Sequence record: NC_048668.1
DNA: 64,000 nucleotides
Direction: 5' to 3' (one strand)
The notes beneath the pieces are model-generated. The model was not told the DNA's origin. It ran no database searches and worked only from the letters and a program-made list of their open reading frames with translations. The translations under genes and the position numbers were made by a program. Shown here piece after piece: positions 28,867 through 39,605 of this stretch. The number at the start of each line of letters is the position of its first letter. Within the stretch, counting starts at the first letter, position 1.

Positions 28867-30506
28867 ATGCGTCTCAATGAAATGCCTTTTAACATTTTCA
28901 TTATGGACGTTACTCCAGAACTTATTCGTTCCATGCGAGCAACGACCACAACTGAAATTTTCGAAACGGGCACACGTAACTTCAACCGGGACGGTTTGTT
29001 TAGCGTAGAGACTTACGGTACGCTAGGTAGCCCAGAACGTGACGGAAGATTCAGCTATATTAATTTAAACACGTCCATTTTCCACCCTTTGATTTACAAA
29101 CGTTTGGGGACATTGAAACGTCTCTATACCGAAATTATCGAAGGTACTCGTTACGCGATATTTGACGAAGAGAAAAAAGACTTCATCCCAGCCGATGAGA
29201 CGGTTGGTGAAACAGGCTTTGCTTTCTTCGTTAAACATTTCCCTAACCTCGTTATAGAGGAAGGCGATTCTGAGATCCGTAACCTTCGCGTTCGCTTGAT
29301 TAACGAAAACCGTAATAAAGCAATGCTCGAACGCATCTTGGTGATGCCGGCAGGTTTACGTGACCTGATTGTTGGAACCGGGCACAGGAAGAACCTCAGA
29401 AGACGAGATCAACAAATTCTACCGTGCAATGATTTCCATCGCTAACGGTATCTCCGGTTCATCCACCAACCGCAATGACCCAATCATCAACTATTCTCGT
29501 CTGAGTTTACAACGTAACTTCAACGAGATCTTTGAGTACGTCTTTAACATGATTAAAGGCAAGAAGGGGTTTGCGTTGTCCAAGTGGGCATCTCGTAAAA
29601 TCCTGAACGGTACCGCTAACGTAATCACGCCGATTGAACGTAGGTACTGATCGCCTGGGCTCTAACCGTACTCCAGTCATCAACGACGTCCAGCTCGGTC
29701 TGTATCAAGTAATTAAAGCAGTACTTCCTAAGACACGTTACTTCATTCGTAACGGTTGGGTTGGCCAGGTATTCTCCGGTAACACCGAAGATGAAGTTCG
29801 CTTGACCGATCCTAAGACACTGCGCGCAGTATTCGTAAAACCTTCTCCAGAGTCCGTCACTCGTTGGACGACTAAAGAGGGTATCGATGCAGAGATTACC
29901 CGGTACAAGATCCTAGGTTTCCGTCAGCGTCCAATTATGGTCGATGGCTACTACCTTGGTCTGCTTTATGCTGGCCCACAAGGTTGGCGTTTCTTTGCAG
30001 ATATTAATGAGCTGCCTCAAGGGTTCGACAAAAAGTATGTCTACCCTATTAACATGACCTCTCTTTATTATCTGAGCGGTTATCGTGAGTGGCACAAAAT
30101 GGCCGGTATCGTTACCCGTTATCCGGTAACTGGCCCAGGCTCTACTTACATAGGAAACATCTATTGTAAGACAACTCAGAAGACGCAATCTCTCCCTGAG
30201 TTGGACGAAAGCTGGCATCGCCTTGGTCCGGACTTCATTGCCAATGAGTTCCCAGACCAGTCGCAAAAAGCGACTCACTATATGACCCTCAGTCCACACC
30301 CGTCACGTATCGCCCCGCTGGGCGCGGACTATGACGGTGACCGTTGTACTTTCACTGCAGTGTACGGTCGTGATTCTCTGGAAGAGTACGAACTCATCAA
30401 GAGTAAGAAAGAGTGGTACGTATCTGCTCGAGGTAGCCTGGCACTTTCTGCTGACGTAGATAACCTCGACTTGGTACTCCGTAATATCACTGGCGGGCCG
30501 AAATAA
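28867..30506 (+). CDS. Virion RNA polymerase beta-prime-like subunit with the catalytic site (phiKZ gp180-like); joined across +1 frameshifts at about 29374 and 29634
   Basis: GLFSVETYG N-terminal motif and catalytic GADYDGD. Three track ORFs join after removing one G and one T. Confidence 0.9.
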
Positions 30507-30535: not shown

Positions 30536-33500
30536 ATGAGTAACATTACTTATCCCGAACTCTATCAACGATTCGGTATACGTTCTACTTCGGGGTTAAC
30601 TACCCCGAAACTGTTTAATCTGGAGAACTTCAAACTCCCTCGTGGAGCGATCGTTCACTACCTGCCTCAGTCGGTTTCCGATTTAGGCCCGGACGATCAG
30701 TTCTTCCCGATTATCAATGAACGTCTTCGTCCCTACGTAGACCAGGTTACCGATATGACCTCCCATGAAGGAGCTCCTCGACGTCGTGGTGCCTTTAACG
30801 TAGAGAACCTGAAGCGCCAGTGGCTGATTCGTAATCGTCGCTACAGACGCGTTACAGACATCGCCAGAGCGTTAGACGATCGTCAAACTGCAATCGTTGT
30901 TAACTACGCTTTGATCCCGATGCAATGGAAATACCAACCGGTCCCAATGGCCCGCTGGTTCCGTTTCCAAAACCTGATGAAGACGTTCGCTGACCGTGTC
31001 AAATATTTCGGTGAACAGTCTAGCCGTCCCCAGTTCCTCTTCCTTACTCTGCCGGATGTATTACCGTCACGTCAATACCTGAACGTATCGGTTGAGGCCT
31101 ACGATGTAATTCAGGATGCCCGTCAGGCTCAGCAAAGTAATCTGCAGAGCCAACAAGGCGATACTATCGCACGGTACTACGATAACCTCTATCCGGGTAT
31201 CATGACTGGCCAGGGTACTGCGTTCTCTAACGAGGCGTTTGATGCCAGTGCGTTAGGTTGGGGCGATGAACCTGCGTTCGAATCCTTCGATGAATCTTCA
31301 CTCTCAATGGGTGATGATGATCCGATCGTAGCCGTTGAGTCGATGAACCGTATTCGCCTGGGTTACTTCCAAGATGACGCGTCTCTGTTCCTTTCTGATC
31401 TTTGGAAGTGGATGTCAGAGAACCGCGATGAATCCATCCTGGGTTCCATCCCAAGTAATGCATTGAAGAACCTTAACCTGGTTGTCATGCGTAACGGTAA
31501 GTTCAGTCTGCTCTCCTTTGATAAACTCGACCAATGGGTTAAGTCTGAAGAGAACGAACGTGGTATCGGTTTCGGTTCAATGTCTCAGACGATGGATCGC
31601 TACTTGCAGAACATCGTAACGACGACTTCGGTATCCGACAAAATCACCGTTGAAGAAGAAGTTGCAGAAACCGGTGAAACGGAAGTCAGCGACATCAAAG
31701 TCCCTGAACCACAACCAGGCGACCCGGATGTAGATGTCAGCGTTGGTGACAAAGGCGAAAGTGACATCGCACGTCTTCGTCGTAGTGCTCAGCGTGTAAC
31801 TAAAACTCCTCGTGAGATTTTGGCAACTAAGCGCAGTGAAACGCCAATTCAAAATACCGACGTCACGGCGACCACAAGTTTCCAACCCGAGGAAACGACT
31901 GTTGTAGTAGACAAGCCTACTCCGGGTAAATCGGAAGAGGAAGTCATCGATACCAACAACCCGTTGATCAAACCGGTTGAAAAACGTTCCCGTGATCTCC
32001 TGAGTAAAGGACTTATCTCGGGTAACGAGTTTAAACGTCACGTACGCCTCGCTAACAGCTTCAAGAGTATCAAAGCACCATTCGGTGAAGGTACACTGGA
32101 AGACTTCATGAAGATCCCTCACGAGCAACTGTGGGACTTTAAAGCGAAAGAGATTCCGGACATCCCTCACGTGGTCGATAAGACCATGTTGAAGTCTACC
32201 TTACTGAACTACGACCAAGATTACATCAGTAATGTCTTCCAGAAAGATGTTGCAAACATGGTCGTCAGTTTACAGAAGGCAGGTCTGGCAATTACGGATT
32301 ATCGCGTCGAGAAGAAATCCGATGCGTTGAACGACCTCTACGACTACACGATTAAAGTCGTGCCGGTCTATGGTAGTCCTTCTACTATCCGCTTCCAATT
32401 ACCGGCAGTGGATAAGAATGGTAAGTATCGCGTGAATGGCACTAAGTACTTCATGCGTAAACTTAAGTTCGATAAACCAATCCGTAAGATCTCTCCGAGC
32501 ATCGTGGCGTTGTCTACGTACTACGGTAAACTCTTCGTTGAGCGCTCTTCGCGCGCAAGTGAAGATTTGGGCCATGTCCTCGTTGACCTGATCGAAAGGT
32601 CTAGTCAGCTCGACGTCCCTACCGTTACCGATTTGGTACTGGGCAATACATTCACGGAAGATCAGGACGTACCGCGCGAATATTCCGCATTGGCAAAAGA
32701 GTTCGTCTCCTTTGTACTGAATGGAATCCTGTTTACATTCGACTACCCTAACCTGGCGAATAACTACACGGAAGACGTCGTAGTGGCAGCTAAGGCGAAG
32801 GGCTGGGTTCCAGTTGGTCGCAAAGGTAAAGAGTTCATCTTCATGAATAATGAAGGTAAGCTCGTCGACGCTAAAGGTAATGTGTTAGGTTCTATCAACG
32901 AGATGTTGGGATTACCTGATGAGAAACTTCCGGTTGAGCAAGTGATCGTTAAGATCATGGGCGAAGAGATTCCGATGGCTGCGATCCTCATGTATCACAT
33001 GGGCATCACTAAGTTGATGAACACTCTCCCAGTAAAACCAGAGCGTCGTGTTAAAGGCACTCGCGTCGAGCCTGTCCCAGGTACGTTCGAGTTAGTCTTT
33101 GCTGATGAAGTTTGGCGCTTCCCTGTCCACGGTGGTAATAGTAGTCTGATTTGGGCTTCCCTCCAACGTTGGAAGAAATACCTCCGTAGCTTCTCTGTAC
33201 AAGAGCTGGACAATCCGGACACCTTTAACCTGCTGTTCGGTATGGCTAACCTGAGTGCGCGTTACGTGCGTGAGATCGACAACATCAATGCGTTGTTCTT
33301 AGATCCTATCGCTATTGACGTACTGCGCGATATGAAAGAACCGACCGAGTTGAACGACCTGTTCATCAAGGCAGCTTTCTATCTGGTGACCGATAACTAT
33401 CCGAGTGATATTTCCTCAGACGGTTCTCTGTTCCGTGGTTACGAACGTATGCCTGGCGAAGTCTACCGTACTTTGTCCAACGCGTATCGTTCTTACGCCA

Positions 33501-33895
33501 GTCAGCCTGTTAGTTCCCGTGCAACTATCGATATCCCGCCGTTTGAAGTATTGGCGGCAATCCAACGTGACCCATCCGTCGCCATCGTTGAGGATTCTAA
33601 CCCAATCCACAACCTTAAAGAGAAAGAGAACGTAACTTACTCTGGTACAGGCGGTCGGTCTAAACGTGCAATGGTTCGTCGTACTCGTGCGTTCCATAAA
33701 TCAGATATCGGTATTCGTGCAGAGGCATCGGTGGATAACGGTGACGTAGGGATTAACACATTCCTTACTGCTAACCCTAACCTGACCTCGCTTCGTGGTA
33801 CAGCAGTTCCAACTGTTGATCCGGATCCGAAGAACGGTGTCGGTAACCTTCTGAGTACGTCAGCGCTCGTAGCTCCATTTGCGACTTACGATGAT
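30536..33895 (+). CDS. Virion RNA polymerase beta-like subunit (phiKZ gp178-like), exon 1
   Basis: GGRS...R, EASVDNGDVG and PFATYDD motifs. Ends at the in-frame TAA that begins the intron. Track start is GTG at 30524. Confidence 0.9.
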
Positions 33896-33919
33896 TAATG
33901 TAATTGAACTGTAATGAAT

Positions 33920-33960
33920 TTAACACTCCTTAATATGAGAAGTACTTAAGGAGCGGTTAA
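33920..33960 (+). promoter_or_regulatory. RBS-sequestering hairpin with a TATG late-promoter core in its loop
   Basis: CTCCTTAA 33926-33933 pairs with TTAAGGAG 33946-33953, which contains the SD. TATG lies at 33934-33937. Confidence 0.75.
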
Positions 33961-33961
33961 G

Positions 33962-34948
33962 ATGCCGATAGAATCAATTCAGTTTCCTGGATTTTACGAG
34001 ATACCCGGATTCGACCGGTACGTGATTTCCAAAGAGGGTAGAGTAGTCAATAAATTAACTGGTACCGAACTGAACGGTAGCGTGAACGAAGCCGGATACC
34101 TCCATTTTCGACTTACACGCGCTGCTCAGGACGCGTTAACGATAGGTAGACATCGATTGATGGGTATTGTCTTTAAAGACCCAGGGATCCCTGTAGACGA
34201 TTTGGTGATTAATCACCTTAACGGCATAAAGGGAGATGACTTCCTAGATAACCTGGAATGGGAAACCTACCAAGGCAACGCTGAACATGCCGGTGAAATG
34301 GGGTTGACTAGTAAATGTTTACCAATCTCTGTGCGAGACTATGAAACGGGAGAAGTTAGAAATTACCCGAGCTTTATAGCCTACGCCAGAGAGTCTGGGA
34401 TGACTAAGGATGCAGTTAGTCGTAGAGTGGCAATTGGGGAGAGACGTTTGTTCCCTGAATTGAAACAATACCGACTAGCATCTGTAACAACCCCTTGGTA
34501 CGCTATCCGAAATAAGGAAGCTGCTCTTAATGAGAACGGTACGGAAAAGAGCGTTGACGTGAGAGAGCTGATCAGCGGAAAGGTAACAACCTTCCCAAAA
34601 GCATCATTGGTCGCAATCCACTTTAAAGTTTCGCCCGCCACTGTTACTCTCTGGTTGAAACAAGAAAACCAACCAGTCTTACCAGGTATGATTCAGATAA
34701 AATTCTCTGATGATGAAACTCCCTGGAGAGAAGTAATTGATCCGTGGAAATCCTTAGAGGAATACACGAAGAATCGCGTCATAGTCGTCACCAATGTCGG
34801 AACCGGCGAAAAGGTATTTTATCCATCCGGCAAAGATTGCGCAACCAAACGAAACATTAAACCAACCACGCTACACATGCGGTTGAAATCCCCTAAAGGG
34901 AAAGTGTTCTCCGATGGCTGTCGATACGACTATTATTCAGAAATTTAA
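33962..34948 (+). CDS. Intron-encoded NUMOD4-HNH homing endonuclease with C-terminal NUMOD1-like repeats
   Basis: IPGFDRYVISKEGRV, GYL, HRL, INHLNGIKGDDFLDNLEW, then three repeats of the type V.D..TGE...(Y/F)PS. Confidence 0.92.
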   Translation: MPIESIQFPGFYEIPGFDRYVISKEGRVVNKLTGTELNGSVNEAGYLHFRLTRAAQDALTIGRHRLMGIVFKDPGIPVDDLVINHLNGIKGDDFLDNLEWETYQGNAEHAGEMGLTSKCLPISVRDYETGEVRNYPSFIAYARESGMTKDAVSRRVAIGERRLFPELKQYRLASVTTPWYAIRNKEAALNENGTEKSVDVRELISGKVTTFPKASLVAIHFKVSPATVTLWLKQENQPVLPGMIQIKFSDDETPWREVIDPWKSLEEYTKNRVIVVTNVGTGEKVFYPSGKDCATKRNIKPTTLHMRLKSPKGKVFSDGCRYDYYSEI

Positions 34949-35266
34949 TTACCAGGTCACTTCTGAGAGTAATCTCAGTCGATAACTCCTTTAATTGCTG
35001 GAACCCCCTTAGAGCTTAATCAACTACAACGTAGATCGAAAGATCAAGCGTGAATGTTTGAAAATGATTAAGATTGGGCAATCAGCAGCGAAGCTCCTGT
35101 AAAATGGAGAACGTTCAACGACTATCGCCGTCGGGCGAGTAGGGTTCAAGTGAACTCGAAACGGGGAGCCCCTTTAATTAGGGTGAAGATATAGTCTCGA
35201 CATCTGAGGAAAGCTCAGAGCTGCAAAGGCAGGCTTAGGAGTAACGAACCTAAGTGAAGATTTTCG

Positions 35267-36418
35267 CCAAAACGAGTAAGTTTCATCTCTATTCAGCAAT
35301 CCCACGTTATCGCTTCTAGTGACGCAATGGTTTCTCCTATCCGTACTGGGTACGAGCAAGTCATGGCTCACCGTGTTGACGATACATTCGCTACCGCGGC
35401 TAAAGGCCCAGGGGTGGTGACAGAGAAAGGCCCTAACTACATGGTCGTAAAATACGACGATGAGAAATTAGGTGAGGAGCGTATCCAATTAGGTCGTCGC
35501 TTCGGTGTGGTAACTGGTCACGTTGTTCCACACGCCGTAGTATCTGAACTGGAAGTGGGTAAGCGAGTAGTAGAAGGTGAGATCGTAAGTTACCATCCTG
35601 GGTTCTTCCAGCGCGACTGGCGTGACCCGACTCAGGTGCTGTGGAAGTCAGGTACTCTGGCCAACATCGCACTGATGGAAAACAACTCGACCTTTGAGGA
35701 TGCGAGTTTGATCTCCGAATCACTCTCTAAACGTCTGCACACGCCGACTAGCCATACGCGTACTATCTTGGTTAACTTTAACCAGGGTATTCGTAATCTG
35801 GTAGCGGTTGGCGAACATGTAGATAATGAAACGGTTCTCGGCTACATTGAGGATGAGGTTTCTTCTGCGAGTGATTTGTTCGACGAGTCCACTTTGGAAG
35901 CATTGAAACGTTTGGGTTCTCCAGCTCCGCGTGCTAAGTATGTAGGAGATATCGAGAAAATCGAGGTAATCTATTTCGGTGAGAAGGAAGACATGTCTCC
36001 TTCATTACGGAAAATTGCGGATTACTACGATAACCAACGCGCCAAGCTTTCTAAGGCTTTGGGTGGTACAGAAGCGAAGACTGGGCAGATTTTCACGCCT
36101 ACGCGATTGGACGGTCTCTCTATTGAGATTGATATGATGGCGATTCGTATCTACATTACCCATGACCGCTCTATGGGTGACGGGGACAAGATCGTGGTGG
36201 GTAACCAGAAAAAGTCCGTGGTGTCTGGAGTGTTCACTGGTAAGTGCCGTACTGTCGGCCCAGTGATTCCTGGCGATAAACCATGGGACGTAGATCTCCA
36301 GTTCTCGTACAAGTCTGTAAACGCACGTATCGTAAACTCCGCGATGATGTCGGGGATGGTTAACATCCTTCTCCAGCACATTGCCACTGCGATGCTGAAC
36401 GCTTACAACGAAGAGTAG
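35267..36418 (+). CDS. Virion RNA polymerase beta-like subunit, exon 2
   Basis: In frame with track ORF 35327-36418 (60 nt upstream). PKRVSFISIQQSH, TFEDAS and GDGDKIVVGNQKKSV beta motifs. Confidence 0.9.
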   Translation, partial: PKRVSFISIQQSHVIASSDAMVSPIRTGYEQVMAHRVDDTFATAAKGPGVVTEKGPNYMVVKYDDEKLGEERIQLGRRFGVVTGHVVPHAVVSELEVGKRVVEGEIVSYHPGFFQRDWRDPTQVLWKSGTLANIALMENNSTFEDASLISESLSKRLHTPTSHTRTILVNFNQGIRNLVAVGEHVDNETVLGYIEDEVSSASDLFDESTLEALKRLGSPAPRAKYVGDIEKIEVIYFGEKEDMSPSLRKIADYYDNQRAKLSKALGGTEAKTGQIFTPTRLDGLSIEIDMMAIRIYITHDRSMGDGDKIVVGNQKKSVVSGVFTGKCRTVGPVIPGDKPWDVDLQFSYKSVNARIVNSAMMSGMVNILLQHIATAMLNAYNEE

Positions 36419-38890: not shown

Positions 38891-39605
38891 ATGGACATCG
38901 AACTCGGGTTAATGGAGTACTTACTTAAGTTTCCTCCGTATGTCATTGAAGGTCTGGAGATTGACAAGTCGAATCCGGTCTTGCTCCACATCTCCCCAAA
39001 CCCGAATATTCGAGAGTTCGTTCCTCGTCCAATTCAGCGGACGATGAAAGGAGAAGATGAATACGTCCCTCGTGTTTGCACGGGGGTCGGTTTACTGGAT
39101 TGCCTACGCGGCTATGCCGTAGCGATTAACGACTTCCTTAAAAAAGAAGCCACTTGTGCAGGTGACGATGATTGGCTAGGTGGTTACACCATTTACCGCC
39201 ATCCCTAACGAGGTCGCTTTAAAGCCTAGTCCGCGTATGGCTCCTATCTCGAAGTGGTGTGAGGAAAGGTGGTTGGTTCCTTACGAGGGTCCTAACCAGC
39301 CGTATATCCCTGAAGTCGTAGGGAAGTTCTTTATCAACGATGTTAAGTTGGAAGAGGACAGAACTATCGTAACCGAGTTATTCTTACACGTCGAAAAGGA
39401 ACCGATGATCTTTGATCGTCATCTGACGTTATTTCCCGGTTATTGGAGAATCGTTATCCCTCACCTTAACTCGTATTTCGAGGAGAGGTTTAAACGTGCT
39501 GACGTCGAAGTCAGTAAGTTGGATTCTAAAGAATTCACTGTCTCCAAGCAGAGCAAGGCGCATTTACTTTCCTATGACGTTAATTCATTTATAAAGCGCT
39601 GGTGA
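38891..39605 (+). CDS. Hypothetical protein (joined across a +1 frameshift at about 39196)
   Basis: Joins as GGYTIYAIPNEVALKP after removing one C. Contains LLHIS..F.PR..ED..PRVC. Confidence 0.7.

Follow-up and report, generated by a model that had tools for sequence, protein, structure and literature searches.

Why is a virion RNA polymerase (RNAP) subunit gene of a jumbo phage annotated as two fragments with an endonuclease gene between them? The question is raised by a 64,000-nucleotide (nt) stretch of sequence record NC_048668.1 (the window, whose numbering we use throughout), which is part of the genome of Serratia phage vB_SmaM_2050HW (MF285618, 276 kb, genus Moabitevirus; hereafter 2050HW). 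Window position 29000 is position 91000 of MF285618, and positions 33000-36200 are 100% identical to that record. GenBank lists an ‘RNA polymerase beta subunit’ at 30536-33898, a ‘putative endonuclease’ at 33962-34948 and a second ‘RNA polymerase beta subunit’ at 35327-36418, with no intron annotated at the locus. We find that positions 33896-35266 are very probably a mobile group I intron of the IA type, inserted in the beta-like gene of the virion-packaged RNAP. We found no paper in the literature that describes this intron, and the announcement of the related phage Moabite does not mention introns.

The ends of the intron are fixed by an empty allele. In phage Moabite (MK994515), the same gene is uninterrupted, a single coding sequence (CDS) of 4512 nt and 1503 amino acids (aa) that reads FATYDD-PKRVSF and is annotated as ‘virion-associated DNA-directed RNA polymerase subunit beta’. 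Alignment of the two alleles leaves exactly 1371 extra nt in 2050HW, between GAT and CCA, and because the empty allele matches base for base, the intron ends are established at 33896 and 35266. Exon 1 ends with TTT GCG ACT TAC GAT GAT, its final T at 33895, and exon 2 begins CCAAAACGA at 35267 (CCA AAA CGA GTA AGT TTC, encoding PKRVSF). These are the boundaries that had been proposed in a first-pass annotation made from the sequence alone, with U at the exon end, TAA at the intron start and G as the terminal base. The same annotation expected that joining the exons would fuse FATYDD to PKRVSF in a protein of about 1503 aa; indeed, the joined exons encode 1120 + 383 = 1503 aa, and the same amino acids are encoded across the junction in the Moabite allele. 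On unspliced RNA, stops at 33901-33903 and 33912-33914 follow the intron-initial TAA, closing all three frames within 19 nt.

Protein comparisons agree on this junction. The exon 1 protein, whose frame is open already from GTG 30524, matches positions 2-1050 of the 1424-position profile PHROG 3148 (‘RNA polymerase beta subunit’, E 0), and the exon 2 protein continues at positions 1051-1422 (E 4e-136). Similarly, the C-terminal 367 aa of exon 1 are 35% identical to phiKZ gp178 in an alignment that stops at D1072, and the exon 2 protein is 42% identical in an alignment that begins at P1073. The exon 2 piece matches phiKZ at gp178 only, which identifies the gene as orthologous to that of the virion RNAP beta subunit. 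The motif at the junction presumably corresponds to HDDANR in Escherichia coli RpoB. Its second D has been equated with RpoB D675 (PMC11620839). The fused protein would have a mass of ~170 kDa and yield the tryptic junction peptide NGVGNLLSTSALVAPFATYDDPK.

The inserted RNA belongs to the group I family. A covariance-model search had been proposed as a check on the initial call of a group I intron; run here, it matches the full Rfam model RF00028 (1-253) to the plus strand at 34937-35220 with 82.6 bits (E 1.7e-19), compared to a gathering score of 50 bits. No other Rfam match appears in the window when E values up to 0.05 are admitted, and it contains no tRNAs. The R (GUUCAACGACUA; J6/7-P7) and S (AAGAUAUAGUC; J8/7-P7) elements and the strands of P4 are aligned in the match, and folding recovers the other stems that had been read from the sequence (P7, P7.1, P7.2, P8 and P9). 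All features on the first-pass list are present at the positions given there. An unconstrained fold of 35120-35200 yields P7, P7.1, P7.2 and P8, with P7.1 and P7.2 located between P7 and the 3' strand of P3; thus the pair of helices that the first-pass annotation had noted in the T4 introns of subgroup IA2 is present. Based on the predicted structure, IA with P7.1/P7.2 is the furthest assignment that we consider supported among IA1, IA2 and IA3.

The helices are conserved through sequence change. We compared the intron with those found at the same site in Pseudomonas phage PhiPA3 and in the Moabitevirus phages Kodama, Totoro and Yaphecito. RNAalifold analysis of the five same-site introns recovers P2, P3, P4, P6, P8, P9 and P9.1, with 29 of 77 predicted pairs retained through double changes, and direct comparison of helices reveals compensatory changes in P2 (CUGAGA with UCUCAG in 2050HW, UAGAUA with UAUCUA in PhiPA3), P3 (CUCCUU with GGGGAG in 2050HW, CUCUCU with AGAGAG in Yaphecito), P4, P6 and P9. 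P7.2 also differs from that of PhiPA3 by a compensatory change (GCUC/GGGC against GUUC/GAAC). A MAFFT alignment of six introns, which included that of Vibrio phage C-ZP2022, mis-registers P5, P7.1, P8, P9.1 and P9.2 in the distant introns; we consider the ‘broken’ pairs that it displays in peripheral helices to be alignment artefacts rather than counter-evidence to the helices, and C-ZP2022 was omitted from the RNAalifold analysis owing to this peripheral mis-registration.

The P1 helix spans the open reading frame (ORF) of the intron. The ‘P1’ hairpin that Rfam places at 34941-34962 is forced because the ORF occupies the P1 loop, and the true 5' strand lies ~1 kb upstream. In folds of a mini-construct from which the ORF was deleted, the exon end pairs with the internal guide sequence, the wobble U33895.G34956 marking the 5' splice site, and a 9-bp extension, P1a, forms in every fold. 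Because the two strands of P1a flank the ORF, the ORF is in the terminal loop of an extended P1; the 3' strand of P1a contains its stop codon (34946-34948). The guide sequence also covaries with the exon, since the pair at exon position -4 is U-A in 2050HW and C-G in Yaphecito, Kodama and C-ZP2022. At the other end of the intron, a ...GAAGAU(N4-5)G tail is homologous in PhiPA3, C-ZP2022, Kodama and Totoro.

RNAalifold additionally predicts a long-range helix, 34957-34962 with 35252-35257 (UCACUU with AAGUGA). Its first strand lies just 3' of the guide sequence and overlaps it, and its second lies 9 nt before the 3' splice site. One of its pairs is A-U in 2050HW, G.U in Kodama and Totoro, and G-C in Yaphecito, and the helix is not kept in PhiPA3. 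As it overlaps three P1 bases, such a helix would compete with P1 or would position a 3' splice site that lacks P10.

The intron ORF encodes an HNH endonuclease of the I-HmuI type. Its 328-aa product scores 26.2 bits for NUMOD4, above the cut-off of 23.4, belongs to the HNH endonuclease family PHROG 59 (E 1.3e-40), and aligns with the I-HmuI structure 1U3E (E 6.6e-5) across the DH..N..N residues. When identical proteins are set aside, PhiPA3 gp210 is its nearest relative in 50,697 phage records and likewise the best hit in 375 phage records, with 43% identity over 324 of the 328 aa (E 1e-90), which establishes both family and orthology. The predicted catalytic histidine, H85, aligns with H82 of gp210 and the flanking motif is conserved; a gp210 H82R mutant is inactive (PMC11620839). 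The Shine-Dalgarno sequence of the endonuclease gene, AAGGAG at 33948-33953, lies in the 3' arm of a hairpin that appears in both the minimum free energy (MFE) and centroid folds of the 96-nt stretch 33880-33975, a stretch that is not unusually stable (z -1.47). By analogy, this hairpin could limit translation of the endonuclease from precursor RNA. Translation limited by such structure is known for T4 intron ORFs.

The insertion site varies among close relatives. The Moabitevirus site occurs in four states on exons that are >98% identical: an empty site, the 1371-nt intron of 2050HW, a short intron without an ORF, and a longer intron that carries a different HNH gene (Table 1). At the Rfam gathering threshold, nothing is reported in Moabite, Yaphecito or Kodama. 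The introns of Yaphecito and Kodama fall just under that threshold and emerge only with E-value reporting; the scores of the other Moabitevirus introns are 37.5 (Yaphecito), 46.4 (Kodama) and 49 bits, with E values from 5e-8 to 1e-9. That the Moabite locus lacks an insert is evident from its single uninterrupted CDS. The Yaphecito intron has a simple hairpin where 2050HW has P1a and the ORF. The same-site Moabitevirus introns share the overall fold, and the ORF, where present, is in the P1 loop. The endonuclease of Kodama and Totoro is a 413-aa NUMOD1/HNH protein that is only 29% identical to that of 2050HW, and their ribozyme is a mosaic: the stretch from P1' (the guide sequence) through P7 matches Yaphecito at 95-100%, and P7.1 and the part between J8/7 and the 3' end are 2050HW-like.

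We noted a peculiarity at the 3' end of the Yaphecito intron. Under exact restoration of the Moabite sequence, this intron would end in A (...GACTAGA/CCAAAG, the slash marking the splice site); the counterpart of the terminal G of the other introns is found 9 nt further upstream (...CATTG/ACGACTAGA). Use of that G as the splice site would be in frame and would add Thr-Thr-Arg between DD and PKR. The arrangement is not a sequencing error, because phage BUCT660 is identical.

The distribution of differences around the insertion site bears the footprints of transfer. Three phages, 2050HW from China, Haymo from the USA and vB_ParM-25 from the Philippines (with a Pectobacterium host), share the 1371-nt intron at 100% identity, and their exons differ at 12-69 of 4512 positions. 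Between 2050HW and Haymo, 18.5 differences would be expected in the intron at the exon rate and none is seen (P ~9e-9). Around the junction, Haymo has 2050HW-type bases only at markers -10 to +36 and Moabite-type bases at the nearest informative markers, -253 and -193 upstream and +48 and +57 downstream (marker -127 is uninformative, as 2050HW alone differs there), a tract that looks like a short co-conversion tract. The exons of 2050HW and Moabite are 98.4% identical, and 10 of the 72 differences fall in the 25 nt between -10 and +15 (P 1e-11); all 10 are synonymous, including a TCG-to-AGT serine switch. Similarly, exon 1 of Moabite and Yaphecito is 99.6% identical, and 19 of 35 differences are within 300 nt of the junction (P 1e-8). 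Judged from these alignments, the identity of the intron on differing exons and the peak of divergence at the junction are signs of recent homing, and the 2050HW intron appears to be spreading among close relatives.

The host of vB_ParM-25 deserves comment. This phage (L014), assigned to Pectobacterium aroidearum from cabbage, is 99.7% identical to 2050HW over the 3.2 kb tested and has the same intron; either phages of this kind infect two genera or the recorded host may need revision.

Several observations weigh against a mobile, self-splicing intron. By inspection, we found no convincing P10; of the sequence preceding the wobble G on its 5' side, UUACCAG, just one base could pair with CCAAAA at the start of exon 2, and we regard P10 as absent or weak. 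P1 holds only 4 exon base pairs. Fold stability compared to shuffled sequence is not significant (z -1.47 for 33880-33975 and -0.77 for 35120-35200), and the case for the ribozyme thus rests on the covariance model and on covariation. The ORF product scores 20.4 bits for Pfam HNH_3, under the curated cut-off of 24.8, and the test of intron identity assumes similar evolutionary rates of intron and exon. Many natural introns have a weak P10 or none, and its weakness here does not exclude membership of the group I family. Finally, introns predicted around gp56, gp72 and gp179 of phiKZ had no spliced reads in a long-read transcriptome (PMC10914365), and thus in this phage group prediction of an intron is not by itself proof of one.

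Could the intron splice and yet be immobile, its ORF inactive or domesticated and its identical copies derived from ordinary homologous recombination during co-infection? The exon alignments indicate that Moabitevirus genomes are mosaics of general recombination, and the sub-threshold HNH_3 score would fit a decayed enzyme. We nevertheless consider this improbable. The ORF is intact and full-length compared to the experimentally active gp210, with the catalytic histidine and its flanking motif conserved. The 2050HW-type tract that Haymo acquired is very short, with the insertion site at its centre (bounded by -127/-193 and +48), and the peak of divergence at the junction is as expected of co-conversion begun by a break there.

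A gene that is truly split, in which two separately translated halves assemble and a free-standing HNH gene and a dead ribozyme relic lie between them, is a still poorer account, to which we give very little credence. It takes the three CDS of the GenBank record at face value, and RNAP subunits are naturally split in phiKZ-like phages, as is generally known of the phiKZ virion RNAP; the lack of spliced reads from the predicted introns of phiKZ also speaks for it. It would, however, have the gene broken between DD and PKR, in the midst of its most conserved motif. The GenBank start of the second half, ATG 35327, is the first ATG in the exon 2 frame, has no Shine-Dalgarno sequence and would cost 20 conserved residues. 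A relic would not be expected to score well above the Rfam threshold, to conserve its helices via compensatory changes, or to have a guide sequence that follows a synonymous change in the exon, and the uninterrupted gene exists in Moabite on nearly identical exons. An intein was set aside because there is a stop codon at the junction.

The mobile intron that we favor would act as follows. The gene would be transcribed through the intron, and ribosomes on unspliced RNA would be halted by the intron-initial TAA and the stops in the other frames. The exon sequence UGAU would pair with the guide GGUCA ~1 kb downstream, across the ORF loop, setting U33895.G34956 at the 5' splice site. Free guanosine would attack after U33895; G35266 would then take the place of the guanosine in the P7 pocket, and the exons would be ligated as GAUGAU-CCAAAA. 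The spliced mRNA would encode the 1503-aa virion-packaged subunit with the ...YDD-PKR... motif restored. By analogy with gp210, the ORF in the P1 loop would provide an I-HmuI-type HNH enzyme that nicks the intron-less alleles of co-infecting relatives, and recombinational repair would copy the intron together with tens of bases of flanking exon. Splicing catalysis, the nicking activity with its site and specificity, regulation by the Shine-Dalgarno hairpin, and any competitive benefit to the carrier are the parts of this account that we infer.

A bolder reading, which we offer tentatively and regard as possible though rather unlikely, is that the codon boundary between DD and PKR is an active battleground among jumbo phages of Serratia and Pectobacterium. 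In such a scenario, the gp210-like intron, base-identical in Chinese, US and Philippine isolates whose exons differ, may be sweeping now as an interference weapon against intron-less relatives. The Moabite allele would be a selected, endonuclease-resistant target and would reflect more than a different co-conversion history, and the ORF-less and mosaic introns would be further stages in a cycle of invasion, decay and re-invasion.

Table 1. Features of the interrupted RNAP beta-like gene of 2050HW (window coordinates) and states of the same site in Moabitevirus (coordinates of the named sequence)
Feature	Position	Strand	Basis or remark
Exon 1, virion RNAP beta-like gene	30536..33895	+	1120 codons counted from annotated ATG
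P1, 5' strand UGAU/U	33892..33896	+	pairs with GGUCA 34955-34959 in folds of ORF-deleted mini-construct
Group I intron	33896..35266	+	1371 nt; excess over Moabite allele; Rfam RF00028
Intron-initial stop TAA in exon 1 frame	33896..33898	+	read from sequence
P1a extension, 5' strand	33900..33908	+	pairs with 34944-34952; 9-bp helix in every mini-construct fold
Hairpin with Shine-Dalgarno in 3' arm	33926..33953 (33926-33933 with 33946-33953, 8 bp)	+	MFE and centroid folds of 33880-33975
HNH homing endonuclease ORF, I-HmuI type (NUMOD4 + HNH), 328 aa	33962..34948	+	
P1a 3' strand and P1 3' strand (internal guide sequence GGUCA 34955-34959)	34944..34959	+	
Ribozyme core and periphery	34963..35254	+	Rfam alignment, helix comparison, RNAalifold, local fold
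P2	34963-68/34973-78		
P3	34986-91/35163-68		
P4	34996-35001/35082-87		
P5	35004-06/35076-78		with extension
P6	35094-97/35106-09		
P7	35120-25/35191-96		
P7.1	35126-29/35134-37		
P7.2	35142-47/35152-57		
P8	35170-73/35180-83		
P9	35204-08/35214-18		
P9.1	35221-24/35229-32		
P9.2	35234-39/35249-54		
Omega G, terminal intron base at 3' splice site	35266	+	last base before exon 2 compared to Moabite
Exon 2, virion RNAP beta-like gene	35267..36418	+	383 codons and stop
Site state: empty			Moabite
Site state: 1371-nt intron of 2050HW			2050HW, Haymo, vB_ParM-25
Site state: ORF-less intron, 424 nt	Yaphecito L003 4897-5320; BUCT660 L010 2397-2820		identical to each other
Site state: ~1682-nt intron with other 413-aa HNH gene	Kodama L004 4897-6578; Totoro L008 4433-6115		

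Two neighboring loci of the 2050HW record also differ from those of its relatives. The upstream virion RNAP beta-prime-like gene (28867-30506), an unbroken CDS of 1638 nt in each of Moabite, Yaphecito, Kodama and Haymo, is split into three ORFs in 2050HW by single-base insertions at 29374 (an extra G in GTTGGAAC) and 29634 (an extra T in CGATTGAAC). These two insertions are probably sequencing errors in the 2050HW record, not biology. Likewise, at 38891-39605, where Moabite, Yaphecito, Kodama and Haymo each have one CDS of 714 nt, 2050HW has two (38891-39208 and 39273-39605), an apparent frameshift specific to the 2050HW record.

The intron has consequences for annotation and for experiment. 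Two beta fragments are given in the records of 2050HW, Haymo, vB_ParM-25, Kodama, Totoro, Yaphecito and BUCT660, with an endonuclease gene between them in all except Yaphecito and BUCT660; each record should instead have one intron-containing gene for an essential virion enzyme. The natural isolates of Moabitevirus provide a usable system for the study of homing, co-conversion, target-site resistance and interference in enterobacterial phages. T4 introns need translation for efficient splicing; in the Moabitevirus phages, if they too build a nucleus as their relatives do, the intron would have to be spliced uncoupled from translation.

The closest known system is the PhiPA3 intron. To our knowledge, this intron is the only case in which an intron endonuclease has been demonstrated to give a virus a competitive edge. 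According to Birkholz et al. (Science 2024; PMC11620839), gp210 is encoded in a putative group I intron of the virion RNAP beta gene gp211/209, inserted directly behind a pair of conserved aspartates, and experiments demonstrated nicking of phiKZ gp178 at the homologous place, nuclear import and interference (PMC11620839). We located the PhiPA3 intron at 4432-5783 of L005 (1352 nt; Rfam 67.8 bits), with 5' flank ...GATGAT/ and 3' flank ...GAAGATCTCG/ATGAAACGC. The insertion-site alignment that the first-pass annotation had suggested, with PhiPA3 and intron-less relatives, places both introns at the same codon boundary, after the DD aligned with phiKZ gp178 D1071-D1072, and Moabite as the empty allele. 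The host genes are orthologous (the phiKZ gp178 family), the ORF likewise lies between the 5' splice site and the guide sequence, and the introns share P7.2 (GUAGGGYUCAAGUG), J8/7-P7-P9 and the ...GAAGAU(N4-5)G tail. They differ in host (Pseudomonas compared to Serratia/Pectobacterium), in the exon protein (~44-48% identical in 100 residues on either side), in the sequences of P2, the P5 extension and P9.1/P9.2, and in the first codon of exon 2 (Met in PhiPA3, Pro in 2050HW). Because the codon boundary is the same, the gene orthologous, the endonuclease homologous, the ORF placed alike and segments of the ribozyme homologous, we conclude from the sequence comparison that the 2050HW intron is the enterobacterial counterpart of the PhiPA3 intron in the strict sense, as the first-pass annotation had proposed. 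Thus the gp210-type element is no oddity of Pseudomonas phages; enterobacterial jumbo phages and a Vibrio phage, C-ZP2022, have an orthologous element at this boundary, and C-ZP2022 has the same architecture and an endonuclease that is 38% identical.

Across the chimalliviruses, the site is contiguous in most phages sampled (phiKZ and its relatives, Erwinia, Ralstonia and Klebsiella phages, and PhiEaH1), and the distribution of the intron is therefore sporadic, as expected of a mobile element. In Klebsiella phage phiKp_32 and a Raoultella phage, an intron lies ~10 nt further downstream; that of phiKp_32 (L007 4458-5860) is a group I intron of 51.9 bits with a related HNH ORF, inserted after DDPKR with U at the exon end. 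There is a second group I match in the adjacent upstream beta-prime-like gene of both phiKp_32 (L007 748-1078) and C-ZP2022 (L006 1026-1420), and the RNAP genes of such phages seem to be intron hot spots. The HNH gene gp179 of phiKZ (L009 5638-6711), which is 29% identical to the 2050HW intron ORF, is located between gp180 and gp178 and followed by ~500 nt of unannotated DNA; the DD site of phiKZ is intron-less.

More distant likenesses are confined to parts of the element. In Kayvirus (Twort-like) Staphylococcus phages, 47-49 nt around P6-J6/7-P7 are 94-96% identical to 2050HW, and in the Aeromonas jumbo phages PS1 and PS2, 112 nt (window 34984-35095, P3 to P6; L011 3001-3112 in PS2) are 87.6% identical; these introns have other host genes and insertion sites, and the likeness is limited to the core. 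In PS1 and PS2, the matching DNA is flanked by an RNAP beta-prime-like gene immediately upstream and an HNH gene downstream. The T4 td, nrdB and nrdD introns, which are IA2 introns with P7.1/P7.2 in the classification of Michel and Westhof, resemble that of 2050HW in having P7.1 and P7.2 between P7 and P3', a stop codon directly after the 5' splice site, and an essential phage gene as host. Nucleotide comparison detected no similarity between the T4 introns and the 2050HW intron, and the T4 enzymes I-TevI and I-TevII are GIY-YIG endonucleases encoded in peripheral loops other than P1, in contrast to the P1 ORF of 2050HW. The introns of I-HmuI, I-HmuII and I-BasI in the Bacillus phages SPO1, SP82 and Bastille likewise combine a group I ribozyme with an HNH/NUMOD nicking homing endonuclease, and homing with co-conversion and marker exclusion has been established for them (PMC11620839, PMC12908238); they differ in host gene (DNA polymerase) and in their Gram-positive phage lineage, and the similarity is detectable in the N-terminal catalytic domain only. 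Compared to these systems, the 2050HW element is a group I intron with an HNH homing endonuclease at a site already characterized in PhiPA3, and what is new is the series of four allelic states within one genus, the identical intron on differing exons and the peak of divergence at the junction.

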